Part shown: positions 355 to 41,808 of the stretch, piece by piece
Position numbering within the stretch: position 1 is the stretch's first letter
Layout: every line of letters starts with the position of its first letter
Sequence record: MN445185.1
Direction: 5' to 3' (one strand)
DNA: 64,000 bases
Position numbers and translations under genes: made by a program
The notes under the pieces: model-generated
Seen by the model: only the letters and a program-made list of their open reading frames with translations
Databases searched by the model: none
Told to the model about the DNA's origin: nothing

Positions 355-930
355 AATAGCGATTGACCGCGCCAATGGTCCAATCACTTTTAAACCCTGC
401 ACGCTAGGGCTCCAAGTCCTGGGACTGATACCCAGGACGCTTTTTCGAAAATACCTACCGTGGTGTCTTCGACAAAGCGCAATCTAACACTGCGTGATTT
501 ATTATGTTCTGGAAAACTTTCGCCGTGGAACAGAACCGGTGAGCGTCGGCGGGGATTCCGACAATCACCACCCATTCAGGTACTCGGTAGATAACCGACC
601 TGCCGACGGTGCTACGTCGGGCGTAGTTCGGTTTGCGAGAGTGTCGAGAAAGTCGACTGCGCACCCATGACAAAATCCGAGTTGACCGTGGCAGCGCCAG
701 AGGACTGGGCAGCGGAGAGACGTCGTTGAACTTACCTCCGATAGTTATCGCTGATTCCGCTCTGGCGTCGGGCCAAAACTGATTCGAATTCGGCGTTGCG
801 TCGAAAAGGGGTCTGCGTGTAGAACCGCAGACTTGGGGGATAACTCCAAAGTGGGGTGATCGGATCTTGACGGCTCGGAACAGACGAGAGGGGTGGGTAC
901 TCCCGTTGTGAAACGCCAGTACCTGGCTGA
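355..930 (+). ncRNA. Candidate large structured non-coding RNA (~580 nt); family unknown, strand inferred
   Basis: No credible ORF. Stems: 416-423/431-438, 584-588/594-598 inside 577-580/599-602, 603-608/615-620, 694-702/760-768, 811-817/826-832, and a GNRA hairpin 904-915 inside 896-900/919-923. Confidence 0.5.
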
Positions 931-984
931 TTAAAATTTACAGATTCTGCGTGAGGTATGATAAACCAAACGGAGAATTAAACC

Positions 985-1560
985 ATGAACTTGTATCGCA
1001 TCGGGTTTTACCGGAACGAGGTACCAGAATCGGTTTTGGTTGTCTTAGCCGAAAACGAGGAGCAGGCCAAATCCTTCTGGCCGGTTAGCGCAGAGCGTAC
1101 AGCGGTTGCGTGCTGCTACGACGGTCCAGTTGCCGCAACGGATGTCGCTGCAGGCGTAGTCCTGAAGATGGGCCGATGGGAAGATTACTCCCATCCCGGT
1201 TTGGAGTTTGTTTCCGAACCTGCCAGACATTCCTGGGAATTTCCCTCAGGCAACACCGAGACGTATTTCGGATTTCAGGTTAAACAACCTTCGACGCTCA
1301 AACTGTACCTGGTGTACAGCGACGCCGCTACCGAAGACTACGTCGATTCCGGAATCATCGTCGGGGCAACAACCCCTGCTGCGGCATTCGCACATTGGGA
1401 CGGTGATAAACCCGGAATCGTTTCGGTCTGTGAGCTACCACTTGAAGCCGGTTTGGTTACGAACATCAAGTGTGAGCAAGGCCAGGAGCTGACTTGGATC
1501 CGCCAGGATTACCTGACGGAAACGACATTCGAGTACACACCGAGGAAGGTGACCCAATGA
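985..1560 (+). CDS. Hypothetical protein with two copies of a small domain also found in 2283-2525
   Basis: 191-aa ORF, SD GGAG, stop overlaps next start (ATGA). Confidence 0.8.
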   Translation: MNLYRIGFYRNEVPESVLVVLAENEEQAKSFWPVSAERTAVACCYDGPVAATDVAAGVVLKMGRWEDYSHPGLEFVSEPARHSWEFPSGNTETYFGFQVKQPSTLKLYLVYSDAATEDYVDSGIIVGATTPAAAFAHWDGDKPGIVSVCELPLEAGLVTNIKCEQGQELTWIRQDYLTETTFEYTPRKVTQ

Positions 1561-2048
1561 CGACGATAGCGTTCGACGGAAAAGTCTTAGCTGCTGACGG
1601 TCAGCTGACCCGCGGGTCGAATATCTGCAACCTGAACACCCAGAAGTTATTCATCTGCCCTTCTGACGAGGAATGGTGGATTACTGGTGAACGGATTGTG
1701 GCGTTCGGAGTAAGCGGTGACATCACAGGACAGTTGGCCCTGCTGGAAACGGTCCGCTTGAGACCCGGCTACAAGGGGTTAACACAAAGCTCGCAGTTAC
1801 CTGCGAAGATGGATTTTACTTTCCTGATGCTTTTGGCCTCAGGAAAAGCGATAGTCGGCGGAAAACGTGAAGACGACGTGACGTTGTGGTGGAGTGAAGC
1901 CACACCACCTCTGGCAACCGGAAGCGGTTACGAGTATGCGTTGGGTGCGATGAAGATGGGCGCGAATGCGGTTCGTGCTGTTGAGATTGCGTCCGAATGC
2001 GATATCTACACCGGTGGTGAGATTAGCACTTACGAACTACGGAGGTGA
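1557..2048 (+). CDS. HslV/proteasome-beta-like Ntn (Thr) protease
   Basis: Start at ATG 1557 gives MTTIAFDGKVLAADGQLTRG; Thr1, Asp13 and Lys29 have the same D-K spacing as HslV D17/K33; ATGSG and CDIYTGG motifs. Confidence 0.75.
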   Translation: MTTIAFDGKVLAADGQLTRGSNICNLNTQKLFICPSDEEWWITGERIVAFGVSGDITGQLALLETVRLRPGYKGLTQSSQLPAKMDFTFLMLLASGKAIVGGKREDDVTLWWSEATPPLATGSGYEYALGAMKMGANAVRAVEIASECDIYTGGEISTYELRR

Positions 2049-2051
2049 ATC

Positions 2052-2102
2052 ATGCGGGAGTCAGAAGCACGCAAGCTTGACCCCATCAATCGCCTGCGAT
2101 AA
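2052..2102 (+). CDS. Possible 16-aa small ORF (MRESEARKLDPINRLR)
   Basis: Strong SD GGAGGTG (2041-2047) before ATG 2052; TAA at 2100-2102. Confidence 0.3.
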   Translation: MRESEARKLDPINRLR

Positions 2103-2140
2103 CGGGGTAGCGCATCCGTATAAACACGTTCAAGAATTCT

Positions 2141-2216
2141 AGGAAAGTGACGCAATTGGTAGCGTACCGGTCTCCAAAACCGGCTGTTTAGAGTTCGAGT
2201 CTCTACTTTCCTGCCA
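2141..2216 (+). tRNA. trnW: tRNA-Trp (CCA)
   Basis: Acceptor AGGAAAG/CTTTCCT; anticodon arm CCGGT-CTCCAAA-ACCGG; T arm TAGAG-TTCGAGT-CTCTA; encoded 3' CCA; 76 nt. Confidence 0.97.
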
Positions 2217-2282
2217 CATTTAGCCAACAAGGCCATGATTCAAAGCAGAATGACACCGAATGTCTAACTGCGGAGAATAATC

Positions 2283-2525
2283 ATGAACTTGTATTTGCTA
2301 GAACGAACTGACGATATCGGGTATGATGAATTTGATTCCATAATCGTGGCGGCTCCTACGGAGCAAGCCGCGTGTGCAATTCCTCCCGACCGTGGTCATT
2401 GGATGGACTGCCGCTGGTTACCGAAAGAGCGCTGGGATGAAGGGCTTACCCTGACCGTTACTCTTATCGGTACTACGCACTATCCTGCTGGGACCGTCGT
2501 TCATGAATCGTTCAATGCTGGCTAA
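2283..2525 (+). CDS. Small hypothetical protein, paralogous domain to 985-1560
   Basis: 80 aa, SD GGAG; MNLYLL...SIIVAAPTEQAA pattern. Confidence 0.8.
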   Translation: MNLYLLERTDDIGYDEFDSIIVAAPTEQAACAIPPDRGHWMDCRWLPKERWDEGLTLTVTLIGTTHYPAGTVVHESFNAG

Positions 2526-3300
2526 ACAGTGGGCTTCGGCCCACTAACCCTATTCGAGCCGTGATACTTACTCAGATTGTGCGGGTTGATGTCCCGCATG
2601 AGCCGGTAGCAGCTCAGACCTACGGTAGACCAATAAATCCGTAGCAGCCAGGTACACAAAGCACCAGGTCGCTTGTACAGGATGCTGGGTATCTGACCGG
2701 TCATAACCTCATTCGATACGAGACACGTTTATGCATGAAATACTCCAGTACATCAGGATGTTGATTTCCAACATCCGGTTCTGGGTATTCAGTCATGTTT
2801 GGTTTACAGGCGATGGGTTTTCCCGTAAGGGCCCCACTTACAGACTGGCGTCTCCACGACAACCGTCCCTAGGGGACAGGCAAGCACCGGCCCATTAAGC
2901 CGCTACGCTACGCCTGTAAATCCACAATCTGATAACCGAATGGGATTGAGTTCCCAGTGTTAGGGTGACTGTGTGTCACCGTAGGCGCGGTACCTCATAC
3001 GGCCGGTACGCCACGAATGTACGTGATAGCGGGTGGTGCTTGGAGACGCTAAGACCTGACCTTACGGACAGGCTCAGAAGAAGAAGTCCATCACCTGTAT
3101 TCAGAAATGAATTTAGGTTAATTATTGGAAGTGGCGAAATCACTTACGTGATAACTTAGTAGTATGCAACGAACAATACCAGAGTGACTTTACGAGGTTA
3201 CTGTGGTATATGTCGGTGCGCCGGGCAACGTGTTGCCGCAGATAAGCCCGAGGGAGCTGAGTGCACTAACACACGCCGGGATGCACCGGCACCTTACAAC
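2526..3300 (+). ncRNA. Candidate structured ncRNA region (one or several RNAs)
   Basis: No credible ORF. Stems: 2528-2545 (UUCG loop), 2580-85/2593-98, 2620-25/2639-44, 2756-63/2769-76, 2803-12/2911-20, 2964-69/2975-80, 3212-19/3283-90. Confidence 0.5.
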
Positions 3301-5836: not shown

Positions 5837-5870
5837 GAGGGAACTTCGGTTCCCTCTTTTTTTTCTTTTT
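5837..5870 (+). terminator. Intrinsic terminator
   Basis: GAGGGAAC-TTCG-GTTCCCTC followed by T tract. Confidence 0.9.
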
Positions 5871-21288: not shown

Positions 21289-21320
21289 AAAAGATGGGGC
21301 TTCGGCCCCTCTTTTTTTCT
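21288..21320 (+). terminator. Intrinsic terminator
   Basis: GGGGC-TTCG-GCCCC followed by T tract. Confidence 0.85.
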
Positions 21321-34794: not shown

Positions 34795-37539
34795 ATGGTA
34801 GAAATTCAAATGACTTACACGAGTATGGGGGTACGGGTTGAAGTCCCTATCCGCCAGGCTGAAAGGGCCATACTCGCGTGGGCCGAAGAGAATATGCACG
34901 CCCCAAAGATGGGCAAGCAACATGGACGAATAACTACGGAACGCGGTGACGCGTACTACGCCCACATTCCGTCTTTAAGGACGTTCATTTTCCATAAAGT
35001 GTTCGCTGAGAAGATTAAACATATCCTCCAACGAGCAGCAATTGAATATGCTTTTCAGTACAAGCTTACAGAGCACCATCCTGAGCGAGGAACACCTTAC
35101 TGCTGTACATTTGATAACTACGGCTTCTCGATGGTAGAAAGCGATCCGGAGTCGCGTTTCTACTATCAGAACGAGGTTGTGGATGCAGCGTCCGATCCAA
35201 ACCGACCACAGACAATCTTTGCCATTCAGACAGGGAGAGGAAAATGCTGTGCTCATGGTACGCGTGTGCGTGTACCGGGTGGTTGGAAGAACATTGAGGA
35301 TATACAGCTAGGTGATTACGTTACGGGGCGTGACGGAAAACCAGCAATGGTCTCTGGAGTGTTCCCACAGGGTGTGGTTGACCTGTATCAGGTGACGTTT
35401 TGGGATGGTAGGAGTGTTGACGTATGTGGCGAGCACTTGTGGCAAAGCTACTACGTTAATACCACCGAGAATCGTCGCTGGGGTGTACGTGATACCCTAG
35501 AGATGAAACGTTTAATTTCGATGCCTAATCCACGGGTATACATCCCATTACCAGAACCAGAGGAAATGCCAGCTAAGGATTTTGTCATTCATCCGTATTT
35601 ACTCGGTATCCTCTTGGGTGATGGCTCCCTATCGATGCCTGGTGTTTTATACACCAAAGGCGATGTGGAGATTCGTGACCGTGTTGCTGAGGTCATGCCC
35701 GCTGGACATGCAATCCATGATTCATCGTACAGCGATGGGATAACGAAGTGCATCTCTTGTCCCGGCGGTGTTAACCTTGTCCGCAGAGAGCTTGAGCGGT
35801 TAGGGTTAATTGGCTGCAGGTCTTGGGAAAAGTTCATACCTGGAGATTACTTCGAAACGTCCATCGAACAACGGTGGGAGTTGTTGCGTGGCTTGATGGA
35901 TACTGACGGTACTGTGGATAAGGATGGTGGTACGCCTTCTTTCTGTTCCACCAGTAAAGAATTGGCTTTAGGTGTTCAGGAACTTGTGCGGTCTTTAGGA
36001 GGGATTGCAACACTACGCGAGAAACGTCCGTTCTTCACACACAACGGCGAACGTCGTGAAGGTCGTTTGGCTTATAACGTCTCCATCCGCCACAAAACAC
36101 CATCGAAACTGTTCCACCTTCCAAGGAAGAAAGAACTGTGTCGTGATAACGGACAATACACCGATATACTGAAACTCCGTGTTAAGTCTATCGAACCCAT
36201 TGGTCGTGATCTTGCCACGTGTATTCGTGTCGAGAACGACGATGCGTTGTTTGTGGTGGACAAGTGGATCGTTACGCACAACACCAAGACCTGTATGAAG
36301 TCGATGGTTAAACGGGGAACCCGTACCGCATTGATTCACCGTCCGTCGTACGTTCCCAAATGGCTGTTTGACGTCTGTGATGATGAAACAGGACTTCGTA
36401 TACTTCGTGACGAGGTGTTAGTTTGTACAGGCGTACAGGCGATTTACGACGCGCTGGAGATGGGTAAGTCGGGAGAGCTAGATAGTCGTGGTATTAAGGT
36501 AATAATCCTCCCCACGGTCTCTCTACAGCGTTTCCTGAAGGAGTACATTAACACTGCTGCGACTAACCCTGTGGACCTGGATACGTTTTATGATGTTCTG
36601 GGTGTGGGTCTGGTGGCGATGGATGAGGTGCACGAGCATTTTCACCTCGTTTACATGGCTGGTATAATGTTGAACCCTCCGGCATCGATAGAGATGTCTG
36701 CAACCCTTAAGCCGGGTAGCAGTAAAGCCTTTATCGCGGAGCGGTATTTAGAACGTTTCCCAATGGAGTACCGAATCAGTATTCCAATCATTCCGGTGGT
36801 TGACGTGAAGGCGTTGTACTATCGACTGGATGATAAGAAGTTTGCGTGGTGGGCGTCGAAGATGACGCCGTATAACCACAAGCTCTTCGAAGGGAAGCTG
36901 ATTAAAGAGAACTTGCATTTAGAATACGCGAACATGATCTGGGATGTGGTTGAGAAATCGTTCCTTAAACGGTATCAACCTGGCCAAAAATGTTTGATAC
37001 TCTTTGCTACGGTAGCGATGTGTGAGTTCTTTACCGAGTATGTGAAAGATAAGTTATCGCGTGACCCTGTATTCCATCCGTTGATGGTGGCGAAATATAA
37101 TGCAGGCGATTCGTATGACGACTTTATCCAAGCAGACTTCTCTATCTCCACACCGGGGAAAGCGGGGACTGCGGTCGATAAACCTGGGTTGGTACACATG
37201 TACATTTCAACCCCGGTAGAAGACCAGCAACTGAACGAACAGATGGCCGGTCGTCCACGTAAGATTCTCCACAACGAATGGGGTGAAATAGACCCAACGG
37301 TGTGGTTATTCCATGCGTATAACGTACCGAAGCATTGCAATTACCTGAATGCCCGCCAGAAATCACTCAAGGATGTCGTATTGTCGTTCCGTATCGCGAC
37401 ATCCCCCTACGTTGTAAGGAAATCACATGCTCACTCCGCCGCGTCCAGCAGAGCCGCTGCCACCCTACATCGGAATGACTTTAGCAAGTTTTCTCGAAAA
37501 CGTTCTAAAGGCGTATCCCGGCGTAGAAGACGTCGCTAA
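34795..37539 (+). CDS. SF2 (DExH) helicase, phiKZ gp75-like, containing an intein
   Basis: Walker A TGRGK|T after splicing; MDEVHEH; SATL; QMAGRPR; start at ATG 34795. Confidence 0.92.
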   Translation: MVEIQMTYTSMGVRVEVPIRQAERAILAWAEENMHAPKMGKQHGRITTERGDAYYAHIPSLRTFIFHKVFAEKIKHILQRAAIEYAFQYKLTEHHPERGTPYCCTFDNYGFSMVESDPESRFYYQNEVVDAASDPNRPQTIFAIQTGRGKCCAHGTRVRVPGGWKNIEDIQLGDYVTGRDGKPAMVSGVFPQGVVDLYQVTFWDGRSVDVCGEHLWQSYYVNTTENRRWGVRDTLEMKRLISMPNPRVYIPLPEPEEMPAKDFVIHPYLLGILLGDGSLSMPGVLYTKGDVEIRDRVAEVMPAGHAIHDSSYSDGITKCISCPGGVNLVRRELERLGLIGCRSWEKFIPGDYFETSIEQRWELLRGLMDTDGTVDKDGGTPSFCSTSKELALGVQELVRSLGGIATLREKRPFFTHNGERREGRLAYNVSIRHKTPSKLFHLPRKKELCRDNGQYTDILKLRVKSIEPIGRDLATCIRVENDDALFVVDKWIVTHNTKTCMKSMVKRGTRTALIHRPSYVPKWLFDVCDDETGLRILRDEVLVCTGVQAIYDALEMGKSGELDSRGIKVIILPTVSLQRFLKEYINTAATNPVDLDTFYDVLGVGLVAMDEVHEHFHLVYMAGIMLNPPASIEMSATLKPGSSKAFIAERYLERFPMEYRISIPIIPVVDVKALYYRLDDKKFAWWASKMTPYNHKLFEGKLIKENLHLEYANMIWDVVEKSFLKRYQPGQKCLILFATVAMCEFFTEYVKDKLSRDPVFHPLMVAKYNAGDSYDDFIQADFSISTPGKAGTAVDKPGLVHMYISTPVEDQQLNEQMAGRPRKILHNEWGEIDPTVWLFHAYNVPKHCNYLNARQKSLKDVVLSFRIATSPYVVRKSHAHSAASSRAAATLHRNDFSKFSRKRSKGVSRRRRRR
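35245..36282 (+). mobile_element. Intein (346 aa) with LAGLIDADG homing endonuclease
   Basis: Begins CCAHGTRV; block B DVCGEHLW; LAGLIDADG-type YLLGILLGDG and LLRGLMDTDG; ends VTHN with Thr at +1. Confidence 0.95.
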
Positions 37540-37810
37540 GAAACTCTGCACCGACGCCACTATCAACCAAGCGTTTCATTACTACATGGTCACTGAACAT
37601 TACAGTGGCCTGTTCCTTAACCAACGCGGGTTGACGTATTACGTCACCCGCACGTCAAGTATCCGTAACACTTCGTCGTACGAGCTTTATACGTACGTGT
37701 TGTGGAATGAGAACCCGGCCGGTAGTGTCGATCAGAATCCAAAGATGGCTTATCGTCTTTACTCTGAAAAATGGCACGATTGGGTGACTGTTCCACACGA
37801 TGCAAGTTAA
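37427..37810 (+). CDS. Hypothetical protein, possibly virion
   Basis: 127 aa, SD TAAGGA; overlaps the helicase 3' end by 113 nt. Confidence 0.75.
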   Translation: MLTPPRPAEPLPPYIGMTLASFLENVLKAYPGVEDVAKKLCTDATINQAFHYYMVTEHYSGLFLNQRGLTYYVTRTSSIRNTSSYELYTYVLWNENPAGSVDQNPKMAYRLYSEKWHDWVTVPHDAS

Positions 37811-37870: not shown

Positions 37871-38491
37871 ATGAGTCGTCGCAAAAAGAAACCCGCTTAT
37901 AACCCACGTAAAGACGCCCGCGATTTCGTCAAGGCGATGATGCAGTCTGTGTTGAAAAAACAAGCTGTGTTTATCGAAAGTACCGAATTCCTGTCAGGCA
38001 GAATTGATCGGGAGCGTGAAGTAACTGAAGCCATTACGCACGAAGAGCTGAAAGCCTTTACGTTGAAAGCGCTGGATGAAGCACAGGCGGCTTTCCTTGG
38101 CATGTGTCAGCAAGGCAAAGAGCTGTTCGGTAAACTGATTGTTGAGGCAGATGCTAAGGCTGTGCCGGTGTTTGACATGCTGAACGATAACAGCAAAACG
38201 TGGAAAGAAATCAAAGACCAGTTCCACGTCGACCACACCGAACTGTCCCTGATTGACCAGCGGGCAAACATGCTTGCGATGGATATTCAGGGCACCAGTA
38301 TCGAAATCTTCTCCACGTATAACGCGAAAGTGAAGTTCGTGAAGCAGGCGCTGAATAACGGGCATACCGTGGAACAAGCCGAAGTTCTGTTGGCTGAAGC
38401 TCTGGCTAATAATTCGAAGGAACTCCCTAAAAACGCCATCGTCGATCACAACGACGTTGTAGTAGAAACCGAGGAAGCGGCACATGTCTGA
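37871..38491 (+). CDS. Conserved hypothetical protein with basic N terminus
   Basis: ATG 37871 after AAGGA; host-like codon bias. Confidence 0.85.
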   Translation: MSRRKKKPAYNPRKDARDFVKAMMQSVLKKQAVFIESTEFLSGRIDREREVTEAITHEELKAFTLKALDEAQAAFLGMCQQGKELFGKLIVEADAKAVPVFDMLNDNSKTWKEIKDQFHVDHTELSLIDQRANMLAMDIQGTSIEIFSTYNAKVKFVKQALNNGHTVEQAEVLLAEALANNSKELPKNAIVDHNDVVVETEEAAHV

Positions 38492-40454
38492 GATCCAAGA
38501 TCAGCGTCCGGGTAATGCCCGTCGCCCTAATCCCGACCAGCCAGCCCCTGTGGCGGCTGCTACCCAACAAGAGATGATTCTTCCGACCGTGCCTGATGAC
38601 GCGACCTCGGATGCAATCATCATGGCTATTAAACAAGCCAATCCCGATTTTTCTTTTGCCCGTGCAGAAGAAGTTTATCACCAACACTATCATCGTCCGG
38701 AGCCTAAGCTTGAGCGTCCGACGTTTGTAGAAGAGGCGTTGCCTGAACCTGCTGCACCTGTACCACCGGCACCTCAGACTTTTGCTGAACAGGTGCAGGA
38801 GCACCTACATCGTGCCCCGGAACCGGTAGTAGAGAAAGCGCCTACGGTAGAACCTGCTCCGCAGCCAAAAGCTCCGGAAGCGGTTGCACCGGCACAGCCG
38901 GCTGTAAAAGAAATGGAAGATGCAGCACCGAAGGTTCCGGAACAACAACAGATGCGTGAGATTGACTTCGGTAATACCCATTTAGCTGAAACCGCCGAAA
39001 TGGGTGAAGATGAAGCCGATCGTATTCTGACACAGTCGAAGATGTTGATTGGTCTGAAACAAGACCCTAACATCATTGCAGACTCCCTGCAAAAGTTCCT
39101 CGGTAATATTAAACGTTCACCGAAAGACGGCCGGCTGCTATTCGAAAGCCCTGAACAGCAACAGGTTTACGACGACATCTATCGTGCTTTGAACATGACC
39201 CCGCCACGTCTACAGGACGGCGTACCGGCATTCGCGGGTGCACTGGACCGTGGTGATACCGCTTGGGAACAGCGTGTGATGTTGCCGGACGGCAAGGCAT
39301 CTGGTGCTATTGCACCGCGTGACAATATGCACACTGGCGCGCTGGCTGCCTTACGTCGTGTACGTAAGTCGGGTATTCCGAACATGGTTTGGTTGCCGGC
39401 CACAGGTATCTACGTGGGCTTCCGCGCACCGCACGAACGTGACCTTTGTGACTTCGACATGCGTCTAACGCTGGAAACTGCGACCATCGGTATGCAGACC
39501 TACGGATTGATGCTGTCGTCGTCTTCTGGCGTGTACATGCGCCACATGGTTGAATTCGCACTTCAGTTTGTTACCGAAGCAACCATCGATTGTGCGGGTA
39601 ACGATCTGCGTACGGTGCTGTTGGATACCATTGATCTGGCTGACTACTGGCTGGTTATTCTGGGTCCGTTGCAGGCGAAGTGGCCGTCTGGTATTCCATG
39701 GACGCTGATGTGTGGCGAAGACGGTTGCAACCAGCAGGAAGATGTGAAGCTGAACATCGCGCGTTGTATCCGTTTCGGTTCCGGACTGTTTAGCGACCTG
39801 CAGAAACAACTGTGGGCACGTCAACGCGGTACTGAGCGTCCAGTGATTTCTATTGCAGAACAGCGCGAATATATCGCGGCGCATCAGGTTGATCCGTCCT
39901 CGGTATTTGAATACCACGACGTGCGTGTTGAATTTGGCCGTTCCACCCTGGGTAGCTTCTTTGACTCCACCGAGAAGTGGATTGAAGACGTTAACGCGTC
40001 AACTACGGCAGCGCTGTCTGAATTTGCTACCGAGCGTGAACGTGAATCCCATATGCGTTTAACTGCGGAAGCCCGTCGCTTAACGCGTTACGCTCACATG
40101 GTGAAGTCTATCACTGTTAATGAGCAACGTGAAGTAAACGGTGAAATGCAGGTTATCCCACAAACTGAAACCGACACAGCGAAAATCGTTGAGATGCTGG
40201 AAGAGCTGTCTTCCGACCGTATCTACGTTGGTCAGTTTGAAAACGCGATTGCTGAATACAACGAACGTACACGTTTAGCGGTATTCGGTTACATGGGTAA
40301 ACGCTGCCCGGCGTGTGGTAAAACACACGGCGAGAAAGACGGTCTGTATCGCGGTATTGTTACCATCAGTCCGGACAGGGTTTTTTTCGTGCTCTCTCGA
40401 GTGGTGTCCGAGATTCAGAAATTCTTGCTGGATCAATACGCCGATATTGGCTAG
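38484..40454 (+). CDS. Putative tail/baseplate assembly chaperone (G-like)
   Basis: 656 aa; P/A/E-rich N terminus; CGEDGC and CPACG Zn motifs; slippery site near 3' end. Confidence 0.6.
   Translation: MSEIQDQRPGNARRPNPDQPAPVAAATQQEMILPTVPDDATSDAIIMAIKQANPDFSFARAEEVYHQHYHRPEPKLERPTFVEEALPEPAAPVPPAPQTFAEQVQEHLHRAPEPVVEKAPTVEPAPQPKAPEAVAPAQPAVKEMEDAAPKVPEQQQMREIDFGNTHLAETAEMGEDEADRILTQSKMLIGLKQDPNIIADSLQKFLGNIKRSPKDGRLLFESPEQQQVYDDIYRALNMTPPRLQDGVPAFAGALDRGDTAWEQRVMLPDGKASGAIAPRDNMHTGALAALRRVRKSGIPNMVWLPATGIYVGFRAPHERDLCDFDMRLTLETATIGMQTYGLMLSSSSGVYMRHMVEFALQFVTEATIDCAGNDLRTVLLDTIDLADYWLVILGPLQAKWPSGIPWTLMCGEDGCNQQEDVKLNIARCIRFGSGLFSDLQKQLWARQRGTERPVISIAEQREYIAAHQVDPSSVFEYHDVRVEFGRSTLGSFFDSTEKWIEDVNASTTAALSEFATERERESHMRLTAEARRLTRYAHMVKSITVNEQREVNGEMQVIPQTETDTAKIVEMLEELSSDRIYVGQFENAIAEYNERTRLAVFGYMGKRCPACGKTHGEKDGLYRGIVTISPDRVFFVLSRVVSEIQKFLLDQYADIG
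40382..40413 (+). other. Predicted -1 ribosomal frameshift signal
   Basis: In-frame heptamer T TTT TTC (40382-88); 6-nt spacer; hairpin TCTCG(40395-99)/CGAGA(40409-13); -1 frame open into 40499-40870. Confidence 0.65.
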
Positions 40455-40870
40455 ACCAGGAAGACGTTCCGTCCGAGCAAATCATTACAACGCTCAAGAT
40501 GGATACCACCTCTCTCTTCAAGCAGCGTAGCACACGTCCTATTACGTATCAGGAAGCCCATAACGAGCTTCTGGAAGCGTATGACCGTACACTGGCTCTT
40601 AATACCGGCGACCATCAGGTAGGGTTGTCGGATTTTGAAAACCCGGTATACGGTAGTCTTTACGATATCTGGTACGCCACTTACTTACGTGAAGAGGTCG
40701 GTGAAAACTACCGGATGTCGATAGACGAGTTCCTCGACCGTCCCCGCTGGCAGATACTGCTGATGCTCGACAATATCCGTCGTCGCAAAGCGATTATCGC
40801 CAAAGCCGGCGAACAGGTGGCAGGTGAACGTGCGCTAAAGGAGCTGGAGAAAGATCTGACGGGACATTAA
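40388..40870 (+). CDS. T-like extension, predicted to be read as a ~795-aa fusion with 38484 (ORF-track start 40499)
   Basis: No SD before ATG 40499; no stop between 40388 and 40499; YRMSIDEFLDRPRWQILLML resembles gp51/GT-type chaperone tails. Confidence 0.65.
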   Translation, partial: RALSSGVRDSEILAGSIRRYWLDQEDVPSEQIITTLKMDTTSLFKQRSTRPITYQEAHNELLEAYDRTLALNTGDHQVGLSDFENPVYGSLYDIWYATYLREEVGENYRMSIDEFLDRPRWQILLMLDNIRRRKAIIAKAGEQVAGERALKELEKDLTGH

Positions 40871-40878
40871 TAGAAATT

Positions 40879-40907
40879 CGGGGCTTCGGCCCCGTTTTCT
40901 TTTTTTT
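40879..40907 (+). terminator. Intrinsic terminator
   Basis: CGGGGC-TTCG-GCCCCG followed by T tract. Confidence 0.9.
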
Positions 40908-40950
40908 ATTCGCCTTGGTATGAATGCCCTTTTCACTATGGAACAGAGCC

Positions 40951-41808
40951 ATGATTGATATTTATACCGACTATGCGGCTGTATTGACAGTCAACCGTCA
41001 CGAAGGTCGTGCAGCACCGATGCTAGATTTAGTGACGCTCGGTATGGATTACGGTTACGATGTGGCGTTATCCGATGTTTATAGCAACCCGTTGTCTGAC
41101 CCCGCGGACGAAACTGTCCGTCTGGAATCCATTATCGTGAAGGTAGCGGTTGGATTAGGCAACCGCCTCGGTATCGGACTTAATCCACAAATCGTCTTCC
41201 AGAAACCGAAAGAAACCGTACGTATCCTTCACGGTGTGTTGGAAGCCTTCGAGGAGTTCGAAGACAGTGATGCCCTTTACGGGATTGTCTCCTCTGGTGA
41301 GACACCAGAGTATATCCTGGAGAACATGTGTCGTTATGTTTACGGTGACGAAAACCTGCACTTCGAAGACCTGATTACTGTTGTCAGCCCACGCGTGCTT
41401 ACCGTGATGGAGAACTTCTTAGCAGCAGAGTCGTTGGAAAGCCAGAAACGAAACGGCGACGACGAGCGTCAACAGCGTATCGTCGCTTACTTGCGGTTGT
41501 TCCCTGAGAACCCGTCAGCGTTTGTCTTTATGAATCTGCCTGCTGAGCCAGACTTAACGGTGGTGCAGCAGTCGTTAGAGTTTCGCGTAGAGGACATTAG
41601 CGAAATTGATTTGCTGACGATGTATGCGGTGGGCTTATCGATTATTCCTCATGCGGAGTTTGATGGGGCTTACGGTGACTTAGAAAAGAACCTTGCCCTG
41701 TTGAACGTCGACAACGTCCCGCCTGGAGAAATCTTGCGGAAAGGATTGGAAGCGTTGAAAGTCATATACGCTAGTGGGGACGCGGAGGTAGATGATGAAC
41801 AAGATTGA
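40951..41808 (+). CDS. Probable virion protein (SPN3US gp41 position); alternative start 40924
   Basis: Long ORF; TATG at 40919-22. Confidence 0.8.
   Translation: MIDIYTDYAAVLTVNRHEGRAAPMLDLVTLGMDYGYDVALSDVYSNPLSDPADETVRLESIIVKVAVGLGNRLGIGLNPQIVFQKPKETVRILHGVLEAFEEFEDSDALYGIVSSGETPEYILENMCRYVYGDENLHFEDLITVVSPRVLTVMENFLAAESLESQKRNGDDERQQRIVAYLRLFPENPSAFVFMNLPAEPDLTVVQQSLEFRVEDISEIDLLTMYAVGLSIIPHAEFDGAYGDLEKNLALLNVDNVPPGEILRKGLEALKVIYASGDAEVDDEQD

Follow-up and report, generated by a model that had tools for sequence, protein, structure and literature searches.

The 656-amino-acid (aa) open reading frame (ORF) and the 123-aa "gene" behind it in Escherichia phage vB_EcoM_EC001 (MN445185) probably constitute a single recoded gene, cg18, whose two parts would be joined by a −1 slip of the ribosome; on the sequence comparisons presented here, the probability of this reading is put at about 0.78. 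Both ORFs lie in a stretch of 64,000 nucleotides (nt) from sequence record MN445185.1 (the window), which derives from a SPN3US-like Seoulvirus: the region is 100% identical to EC001 and 98.9% identical to Salmonella phage SPN3US (genus Seoulvirus). In the EC001 and SPN3US records the two ORFs are each entered as separate hypothetical proteins. The larger one is core gene cg18 of the Chimalliviridae, the phiKZ-like, nucleus-forming jumbo phages in which about a third of the core genes are without known function.

All features described here are on the plus strand and are numbered from the first letter of the window. The zero-frame ORF of cg18, which encodes the putative short product of 656 aa, extends from 38484 to 40454 and was assigned by means of PHROGs 8054 and 4585, annotation notes, the core-gene table and tblastn. 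At 40377–40388 this ORF reads AGG GTT TTT TTC, making T_TTT_TTC at 40382–40388 (the last six T's of a T7 run at 40381–40387, then C) an in-frame heptamer of the type X_XXY_YYZ, as had been recognised in an initial annotation made from the letters alone. The ORF at 40499–40870 is in the −1 frame, which is open from 40322 to 40870 and contains no ATG, GTG or TTG before 40499; its translation from 40388 gives the same peptide that the initial annotation had quoted for the open frame leading to ATG 40499. The −1 extension (40388–40870) consists of 160 codons and a stop, and includes the separately annotated 123-aa gene (SPN3US gp40; PHROG 7580). Together with codons 1–635 of the large ORF it would yield a predicted fusion of 635 + 160 = 795 residues, the size originally estimated. 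The frames share a dual-coding overlap at 40388–40454, formed by the last 21 zero-frame sense codons and the stop on the one hand and the first 22 codons of the −1 extension on the other, and this overlap is followed by a stretch annotated as intergenic (40455–40498).

In the proposed mechanism, host ribosomes would read the zero frame as far as T_TTT_TTC, where the P and the A site would both hold tRNA-Phe. Most ribosomes would continue and stop at the TAG at 40452–40454, producing the 656-aa form of about 73 kDa (an estimate from 110 Da per residue). A fraction would slip back by one base and pair anew with TTT TTT, after which they would translate the −1 frame from 40388 up to the stop codon at 40868–40870. 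The result would be a long form of about 795 aa and about 88 kDa (again from 110 Da per residue) with the same first 635 residues and a mostly helical extension of 160 residues. ATG 40499 would then be an ordinary internal Met codon and no start. In E. coli, heptamers of the type H_HH.U_UU.Y are among the most efficient shift sites, and U_UU.Y ranks second among the tetramers (PMC4066793); this efficiency fits a ribosomal −1 slip of two tRNA-Phe. We infer that the slip is ribosomal, not transcriptional, and that both forms are functional.

The heptamer and the frame relation are conserved over great distances. In 12 relatives from four genera (66–99% nucleotide identity) and four metagenomic contigs (protein identity as low as 41%) the T7C string is identical throughout, the small ORF is always in the −1 frame and open across the junction, and the 127 aligned columns from the T run onward contain no insertion or deletion in any of the 16 sequences. 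The comparison was extended to a table of 48 loci from at least 10 named genera (Seoulvirus, Erskinevirus, Wellingtonvirus, Machinavirus, Phikzvirus, Miltoncavirus, Agricanvirus, Moabitevirus, Chiangmaivirus and Eowynvirus), the species phiKZ, unclassified relatives, metagenomic contigs (16 of them from IMG/VR) and two outgroup jumbo phages, Halocynthia phage JM-2012 and Bacillus phage AgentSmith; Goslar and PCH45 are not among them. The distant loci include PhiPA3, KTN4 (species phiKZ), RAY, AH06, Moabite, RSF1, phiKT1019, DT01, FLC9, Eowyn, phiHQ, Viktualia, BUCTxx100 and RTH11. An in-phase X_XXY_YYZ heptamer made of T's is present at 44 of the 48 loci, and three more retain only the in-phase tetramer T_TTY (G_TTT_TTT in PhiPA3 and FLC9, A_TTT_TTC in phiHQ). 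The small ORF is in the −1 frame at all tabulated loci but one, the RTH11 record, and, with this same exception, the −1 frame is open from before the site and extends for 151–175 codons past the T run (47 of 48 loci). The prediction of a −1 frameshift is strongly supported by the family-wide heptamer, the frame relation, the open frame (all loci but one) and a coding signature upstream of the possible starts, which is described below.

The variation that does exist at the site respects its phase. The T run varies between 5 and 8 T's among lineages, with the phase of TTT TTY relative to the zero frame remaining constant. The codon before the Phe-Phe pair may encode V, L, T, G, S or A, and yet it ends in T in 11 of the 14 deep lineages, and the first Phe codon is always TTT. 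At the codon frequencies of the window the chance of these two patterns would be about 8e-5 for the T-ending codon and about 4e-7 for the invariant TTT, values which are indicative only as the lineages are related and differ in codon usage. In the deep protein alignment only 10 columns are invariant, and Phe-Phe accounts for two of them. The −1 arrangement also occurs at the cg18 homologues of the two outgroup phages (AgentSmith, L050; JM-2012, L051), whose records carry no Chimalliviridae genus; the heptamer of AgentSmith is T_TTT_TTA, and its run is translated as Val-Phe-Leu in the zero frame.

An ORF with its own start would be expected to begin at a recognisable place, and this is the point at which the two-gene annotation can be examined. 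It holds that the small protein is initiated independently, from ATG 40499 here and from other or non-canonical codons elsewhere, possibly by termination-reinitiation, with the upstream open frame being incidental. Every GenBank record stretch retrieved is annotated in this way, EC001 does possess ATG 40499, and some distant small-ORF homologues have an ATG a few residues before the conserved domain. However, this ATG is not conserved, the position being occupied by a Leu codon (TTG, CTC, CTG, CTT or CTA) in many relatives, of which CTC, CTG, CTT and CTA are no starts. The first ATG, GTG or TTG of the −1 frame can be found anywhere from −42 to +85 codons from the site, which gives gene callers ragged N-termini; in KTN4, 85 codons past the site are start-less, and their translation can be aligned with those of PhiPA3, phiHQ and Viktualia. 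ATG 40499 also lacks a Shine-Dalgarno (SD) sequence, as initially noted: none of the SD-like tetramers occurs in the 21 nt before it, compared with 11 of 13 neighbouring annotated starts that have one.

The stretch upstream of the starts bears the signature of coding sequence and aligns as protein across genera. At 40455–40498, pairwise identity at positions 1/2/3 of the −1-frame codons is 0.70/0.83/0.41, which is indistinguishable from the 0.71/0.84/0.44 at the same positions of the downstream ORF. This pattern shows that 40455–40498, annotated as intergenic, codes for protein in the −1 frame. In the 66-nt overlap the corresponding values for the zero-frame codon positions are 0.84/0.74/0.70, so that neither frame shows relaxation at the wobble position, as is expected of dual coding. 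Both overlap peptides are conserved in the SPN3US-like clade, including an invariant zero-frame end. Independent initiation would furthermore require that the −1 relation and the in-phase heptamer are a coincidence repeated in at least 15 lineages, and two independent genes are therefore very improbable.

The two ORFs are shown here to be co-transcribed. No promoter-like and no convincing terminator-like site exists between them, and a strong terminator-like hairpin with a T tract follows directly after the small ORF (40879–40907), starting 9 nt past the −1-frame stop, where it would end the transcription unit.

Codon usage within the window sets the site apart from the rest of the phage's genes. 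In the 34 long ORFs of the window (15,672 codons) Phe is encoded by TTT in only 35% of cases, and 22 of the 23 Phe-Phe pairs begin with TTC; the sole pair that begins with TTT is the one at the frameshift site. So strong a codon-pair bias looks as though selection removed slippery T runs everywhere but at this site. The window contains 15 homopolymer runs of at least 7 T's or A's, of which only the run at 40381 is clearly within a real gene. The others are outside ATG-started ORFs of at least 100 aa or antisense to such ORFs, and many resemble terminator tails; one of them, at 21312, is in a terminator-like context inside a mechanically listed ORF.

Several observations weigh against a programmed ribosomal frameshift. 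The 5-bp hairpin that was predicted to begin 6 nt past the heptamer is present, with arms at 40395–40399 and 40409–40413 (40395–40413 in all; 5 bp plus one G-C pair and a 9-nt loop by folding), and could be a weak stimulator. A stimulatory structure usually, though not obligatorily, accompanies such heptamers 5–9 nt further on, and the hairpin has the right spacing. In EC001, however, its folding energy of −5.3 kcal/mol is no better than that of shuffled sequence (z = +0.37). The consensus fold reaches −5.9 kcal/mol with only one compensatory change; the hairpin sequence is kept in the SPN3US-like clade, but the stretch is dual-coding. A stable downstream structure was found in none of 17 lineages. 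As no convincing stimulator was found, the efficiency of the shift may be modest or low, or it may depend on an unseen factor. The invariance of Phe-Phe could be partly due to the function of the protein. Searches for direct evidence yielded no junction peptide, ribosome profile or immunoblot.

The virion proteome of SPN3US does not help in this respect. The masses reported there for gp37 (14.6 kDa), gp38 (23.2 kDa), gp41 (31.8 kDa) and gp42 (49.3 kDa) (PMC5694885, Suppl. Table 1) fit the neighbouring ORFs of 127, 206, 285 and 432 aa, which identifies the 656-aa ORF as gp39 and the 123-aa ORF as gp40 in the original SPN3US numbering. These four neighbours are present in the virion, and gp39 and gp40 are both absent from it (PMC5694885, Suppl. 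Table 1), so that the virion data are silent on the fusion. A further difficulty is the record of Xanthomonas phage RTH11 (L044, OQ790161), which is one base out of register at the run. It is the only record in which the gene body, the conserved short tail and the conserved long extension are in three different frames, and the annotated ORF continues for about 70 codons without homology. This is either a miscalled homopolymer length or a real variant.

Finally, a run of T's favours slippage of the RNA polymerase as much as that of the ribosome. In such a mechanism an RNA polymerase, either that of the host or one of the phage's own multisubunit enzymes, would add one U on the run in a fraction of transcripts, and normal translation of the altered message would give the same long protein. 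The site is a homopolymer of 6–8 T's in most lineages, the conserved T at the third position of the preceding codon not only completes the heptamer but also makes the run longer, and no strong ribosomal stimulator accompanies it; in addition, the avoidance of UUUUUUU in genes is thought to be partly owing to transcriptional slippage (PMC4066793). Against this stand phiHQ, which keeps the arrangement with only T5, the constant phase of TTT TTY over runs of 5–8 T's, and the fact that the motifs present are known as efficient ribosomal shift sites in E. coli (PMC4066793). Transcriptional slippage is unlikely on balance, though it retains a real share of the probability.

A genuinely fused form of the protein does not seem to exist. 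The −1 piece was run by phmmer against 1.84 billion representative proteins and gave 27 matches, of which 24 are small proteins (71–165 aa) with ragged N-termini and two are longer proteins that match only weakly (E value (E) > 1e-4). A 312-aa fragment (P0036) was considered as a natural fusion and rejected, as its change of frame comes some 30 codons before the heptamer. Neither the 1.84 billion proteins nor 31 homologues from a word-based search included a genuinely fused long form, and the intact large-ORF homologues are all 616–706 aa long. Enterobacteria phage SEGD1 (L003, KU726251) is annotated with one 795-aa ORF (coding sequence 885..3272) and was likewise rejected as a genuine fusion: its T7 run is unchanged, and the single ORF arises from a cluster of substitutions and indels with a net effect of one base, located before the heptamer in a region where neither frame has a stop. 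With no real fused form and SEGD1 explained by this upstream difference, the split arrangement is the natural state and not an error. That a ~795-aa gene was split by a homopolymer sequencing error or by a real frameshift mutation, as the error-prone nature of homopolymers and the single ORF of the close relative SEGD1 might suggest, has a negligible likelihood given the recurrence of the arrangement in dozens of genomes sequenced by many laboratories and on many platforms, metagenomes included, the T7 run kept in SEGD1, the conserved zero-frame tail and stop in the SPN3US-like clade and the lack of a fused form in large protein libraries.

The cg18 family is large and its surroundings are conserved. 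Homologues of the large ORF were found by tblastn in 231 phage records, and the ORF matches PHROG 4585 with E 4e-66. They include SPN3US gp39, phiKZ gp077, PhiPA3 gp074, RAY gp267 and Goslar gp081; the PhiPA3 annotation equates its homologue with phiKZ gp077, 201phi2-1 gp136 and EL gp47. The neighbours of cg18, homologues of gp078, gp079 and gp080, are syntenic across distant relatives. In the supplement of Prichard et al. 2023, cg18 (Goslar gp081, PhiKZ gp077, RAY gp267) is listed as a "hypothetical protein" with no link to the small ORF. Searches of Pfam, NCBIfam and PDB sequences with either piece, and with profiles, gave no match, and PHROGs returned only families of unknown function. An alignment-based protein search, which relies on shared words, found no homologue beyond the SPN3US-like clade. 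The main text of the Goslar virion-structure paper does not mention gp081.

Structure prediction gives a partial picture of the protein. The AlphaFold model of the 656-aa form has a mean predicted local distance difference test score (pLDDT) of 61, with a core at residues ~290–600 near 80. The N-terminal ~190 residues are mostly of low confidence, with the look of a disordered, Pro/Ala-rich region; only a short stretch at ~31–70 is modelled with confidence. Residues 1–190 (38484–39050) are Pro/Ala/Glu-rich in sequence, highly variable in length among relatives and nearly absent in the phiKZ-like homologues. The −1 piece is predicted, at low confidence (pLDDT 58), to be helical with a long C-terminal helix. 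A fold search of the PDB with the large-ORF model returned nothing below E 0.69. In BFVD the model matches Chimalliviridae homologues and, weakly, a "Baseplate hub assembly protein, bacteriophage T4-like" (E 1.9e-4, probability 1.00, template modelling score 0.49 by target and 0.25 by query, 13% identity), a family name that goes back to InterPro/Pfam.

The comparison with T4 gp26 that had been proposed at the outset rests on this one weak BFVD match, obtained with a model of low mean confidence, and found no counterpart in the PDB, where the search returned no gp26 structure. Annotators of pEa_SNUABM_43, DT01 and AgentSmith labelled the homologue as gp26-like (T4 gp26 being named only in SNUABM_43 and DT01), and those of AH06 called it a baseplate protein. 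For the T4 gp26-like family there was no Pfam match at E ≤ 0.1, no baseplate-annotated PHROG at E ≤ 5 in 21 members and no NCBIfam match. The cg18 protein is also two to three times longer than the T4 gp26-like protein, and we know of no frameshift in T4 gene 26. The absence of gp39 and gp40 from the virion and the weak gp26-like fold match make a non-virion role in assembly plausible, though unproven. It is a tentative suggestion, with the odds somewhat against it, that cg18 is a non-virion assembly factor of which two forms are made in a fixed ratio.

The initial annotation had gone further and read the two products as tail assembly chaperones of the G/GT or P2 E/E' type, which is not borne out. 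The resemblance lies in the principle: lambda G/GT and P2 E/E' likewise use a −1 slip on a slippery heptamer near the 3' end of the upstream ORF, produce a short and a C-terminally extended form with a common N-terminus, and maintain this arrangement beyond the conservation of sequence. Their products are absent from the mature virion, as are SPN3US gp39 and gp40, a likeness that is consistent with such a role and not specific to it. Chaperones of the G/GT type have a short form of roughly 100–150 aa and a long form of 250–300 aa. By contrast, the cg18 products of 656 and ~795 aa are about five times too large when compared with the roughly 140 and 280 aa of the lambda G/GT type. Lambda G/GT is flanked by the genes for the tail tube and the tape measure, and cg18 is not; their SPN3US counterparts, gp255 (tail tube) and gp239 (tape measure), are both elsewhere in the genome (PMC5694885), in agreement with the initial remark that no tape-measure gene is near. 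No tail-chaperone family match was found for cg18 in Pfam, PHROGs or NCBIfam, and the sole fold match of its model to a "tail assembly chaperone", in BFVD, falls short of significance (E 0.37, probability 0.09).

A different solution would be that cg18 arose independently and represents, for its family, a defining counterpart of the G/GT principle. In this proposal, a non-virion assembly or scaffolding factor would have the ratio of its forms set by an unusually simple slippery site with little or no stimulator. The helical extension of 160 residues would anchor the shared body to some structure peculiar to the Chimalliviridae, for example the baseplate hub or the apparatus by which the virion RNA polymerase and the low-copy virion proteins encoded nearby are loaded. 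A scheme of this detail is speculative and rather unlikely to be right as a whole. One further possibility is that the ratio of short to long form shifts during infection as the phage remodels host translation.

Insertion sequences (IS) offer a second comparison. The OrfA/OrfAB pairs of IS3 and IS1 also have a start-less downstream ORF in the −1 frame which overlaps the end of the upstream ORF and is expressed only as a fusion, and U_UU.U_UU.C is among the heptamers used by IS elements (PMC4066793). By contrast, cg18 is not part of a mobile element, the shift would occur with 21 codons of a long ORF still to come, the extension adds no more than 160 residues, and no pseudoknot or strong hairpin was found at the site.

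Programmed −1 frameshifts that add a C-terminal extension are classical, and the novelty here lies in the gene family and in how deeply the event is conserved. The claim that the site had not been annotated in the Chimalliviridae is upheld by the phage record stretches retrieved, none of which has a joined coding sequence, and by literature searches, which found no description of the site for SPN3US, phiKZ or PHIKZ077/076, with the proviso that the numbers gp39, gp40 and gp77 are shared with other phages. The 2016 recoding review makes no mention of phiKZ, jumbo phages or baseplate genes.

If the frameshift reading is correct, two "hypothetical" genes become one recoded gene, and cg18 would be redefined in every family member examined, a homologue being present in 231 phage records. 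The ragged annotation of the small ORF plausibly kept it off the core-gene list, which has cg18 alone. Reading the locus as one gene would also provide a handle on cg18, as two products of ~73 and 88 kDa with 635 residues in common are to be expected. Gene callers, as well as knock-down, transposon and proteomic screens that treat the two ORFs separately, would misread results at this locus. Deeply conserved −1 frameshifts in phages outside the tail-chaperone genes are a rare kind of case.

The genes around cg18 include those for RNA polymerase beta subunits, a helicase, a DNA polymerase and the low-copy virion proteins gp37, gp38, gp41 and gp42. The helicase is annotated at 34795..37539 in EC001 (914 aa), and the SPN3US annotation covers only the final 1707 nt of that stretch. 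The 127-aa ORF at 37427..37810 overlaps the 3' end of the helicase gene by 113 nt in another frame; its product, the 14.6-kDa gp37, is found in SPN3US virions. The gene after the small ORF, which is the homologue of the virion protein gp41, has its annotated ATG at 40951 without an SD-like tetramer, and an in-frame ATG is located 27 nt upstream at 40924.

A motif recurs at several of the T runs of the window: a C-rich stretch followed by CTTTTTTT(G/C) is present at 5857, 18720, 21312, 30010, 34771, 43644, 58697, 62097 and other positions. At several of these sites the preceding letters resemble the end of a GC-rich hairpin. The motif looks like the standard intrinsic terminator of the phage and would account for about half of the 15 T/A runs.

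Some database entries related to the window are unusual. Salmonella phages SPFM1, 5–10, 12, 14, 15 and 20 (LR5359xx) match the window as 13–39 short pieces, and the SPFM homologues of cg18 are called as fragments (P0025, P0028, P0030, P0031, P0059), the assemblies apparently being full of small indels. Other homologues of the large ORF (P0001, P0003, P0008, P0010, P0011) are filed under the names Escherichia coli or Salmonella enterica or come from unnamed sequencing-run or ENA assemblies; their clusters contain as many as 282 sequences. SPN3US-like phages thus seem to be frequent passengers in the assemblies of bacterial isolates.

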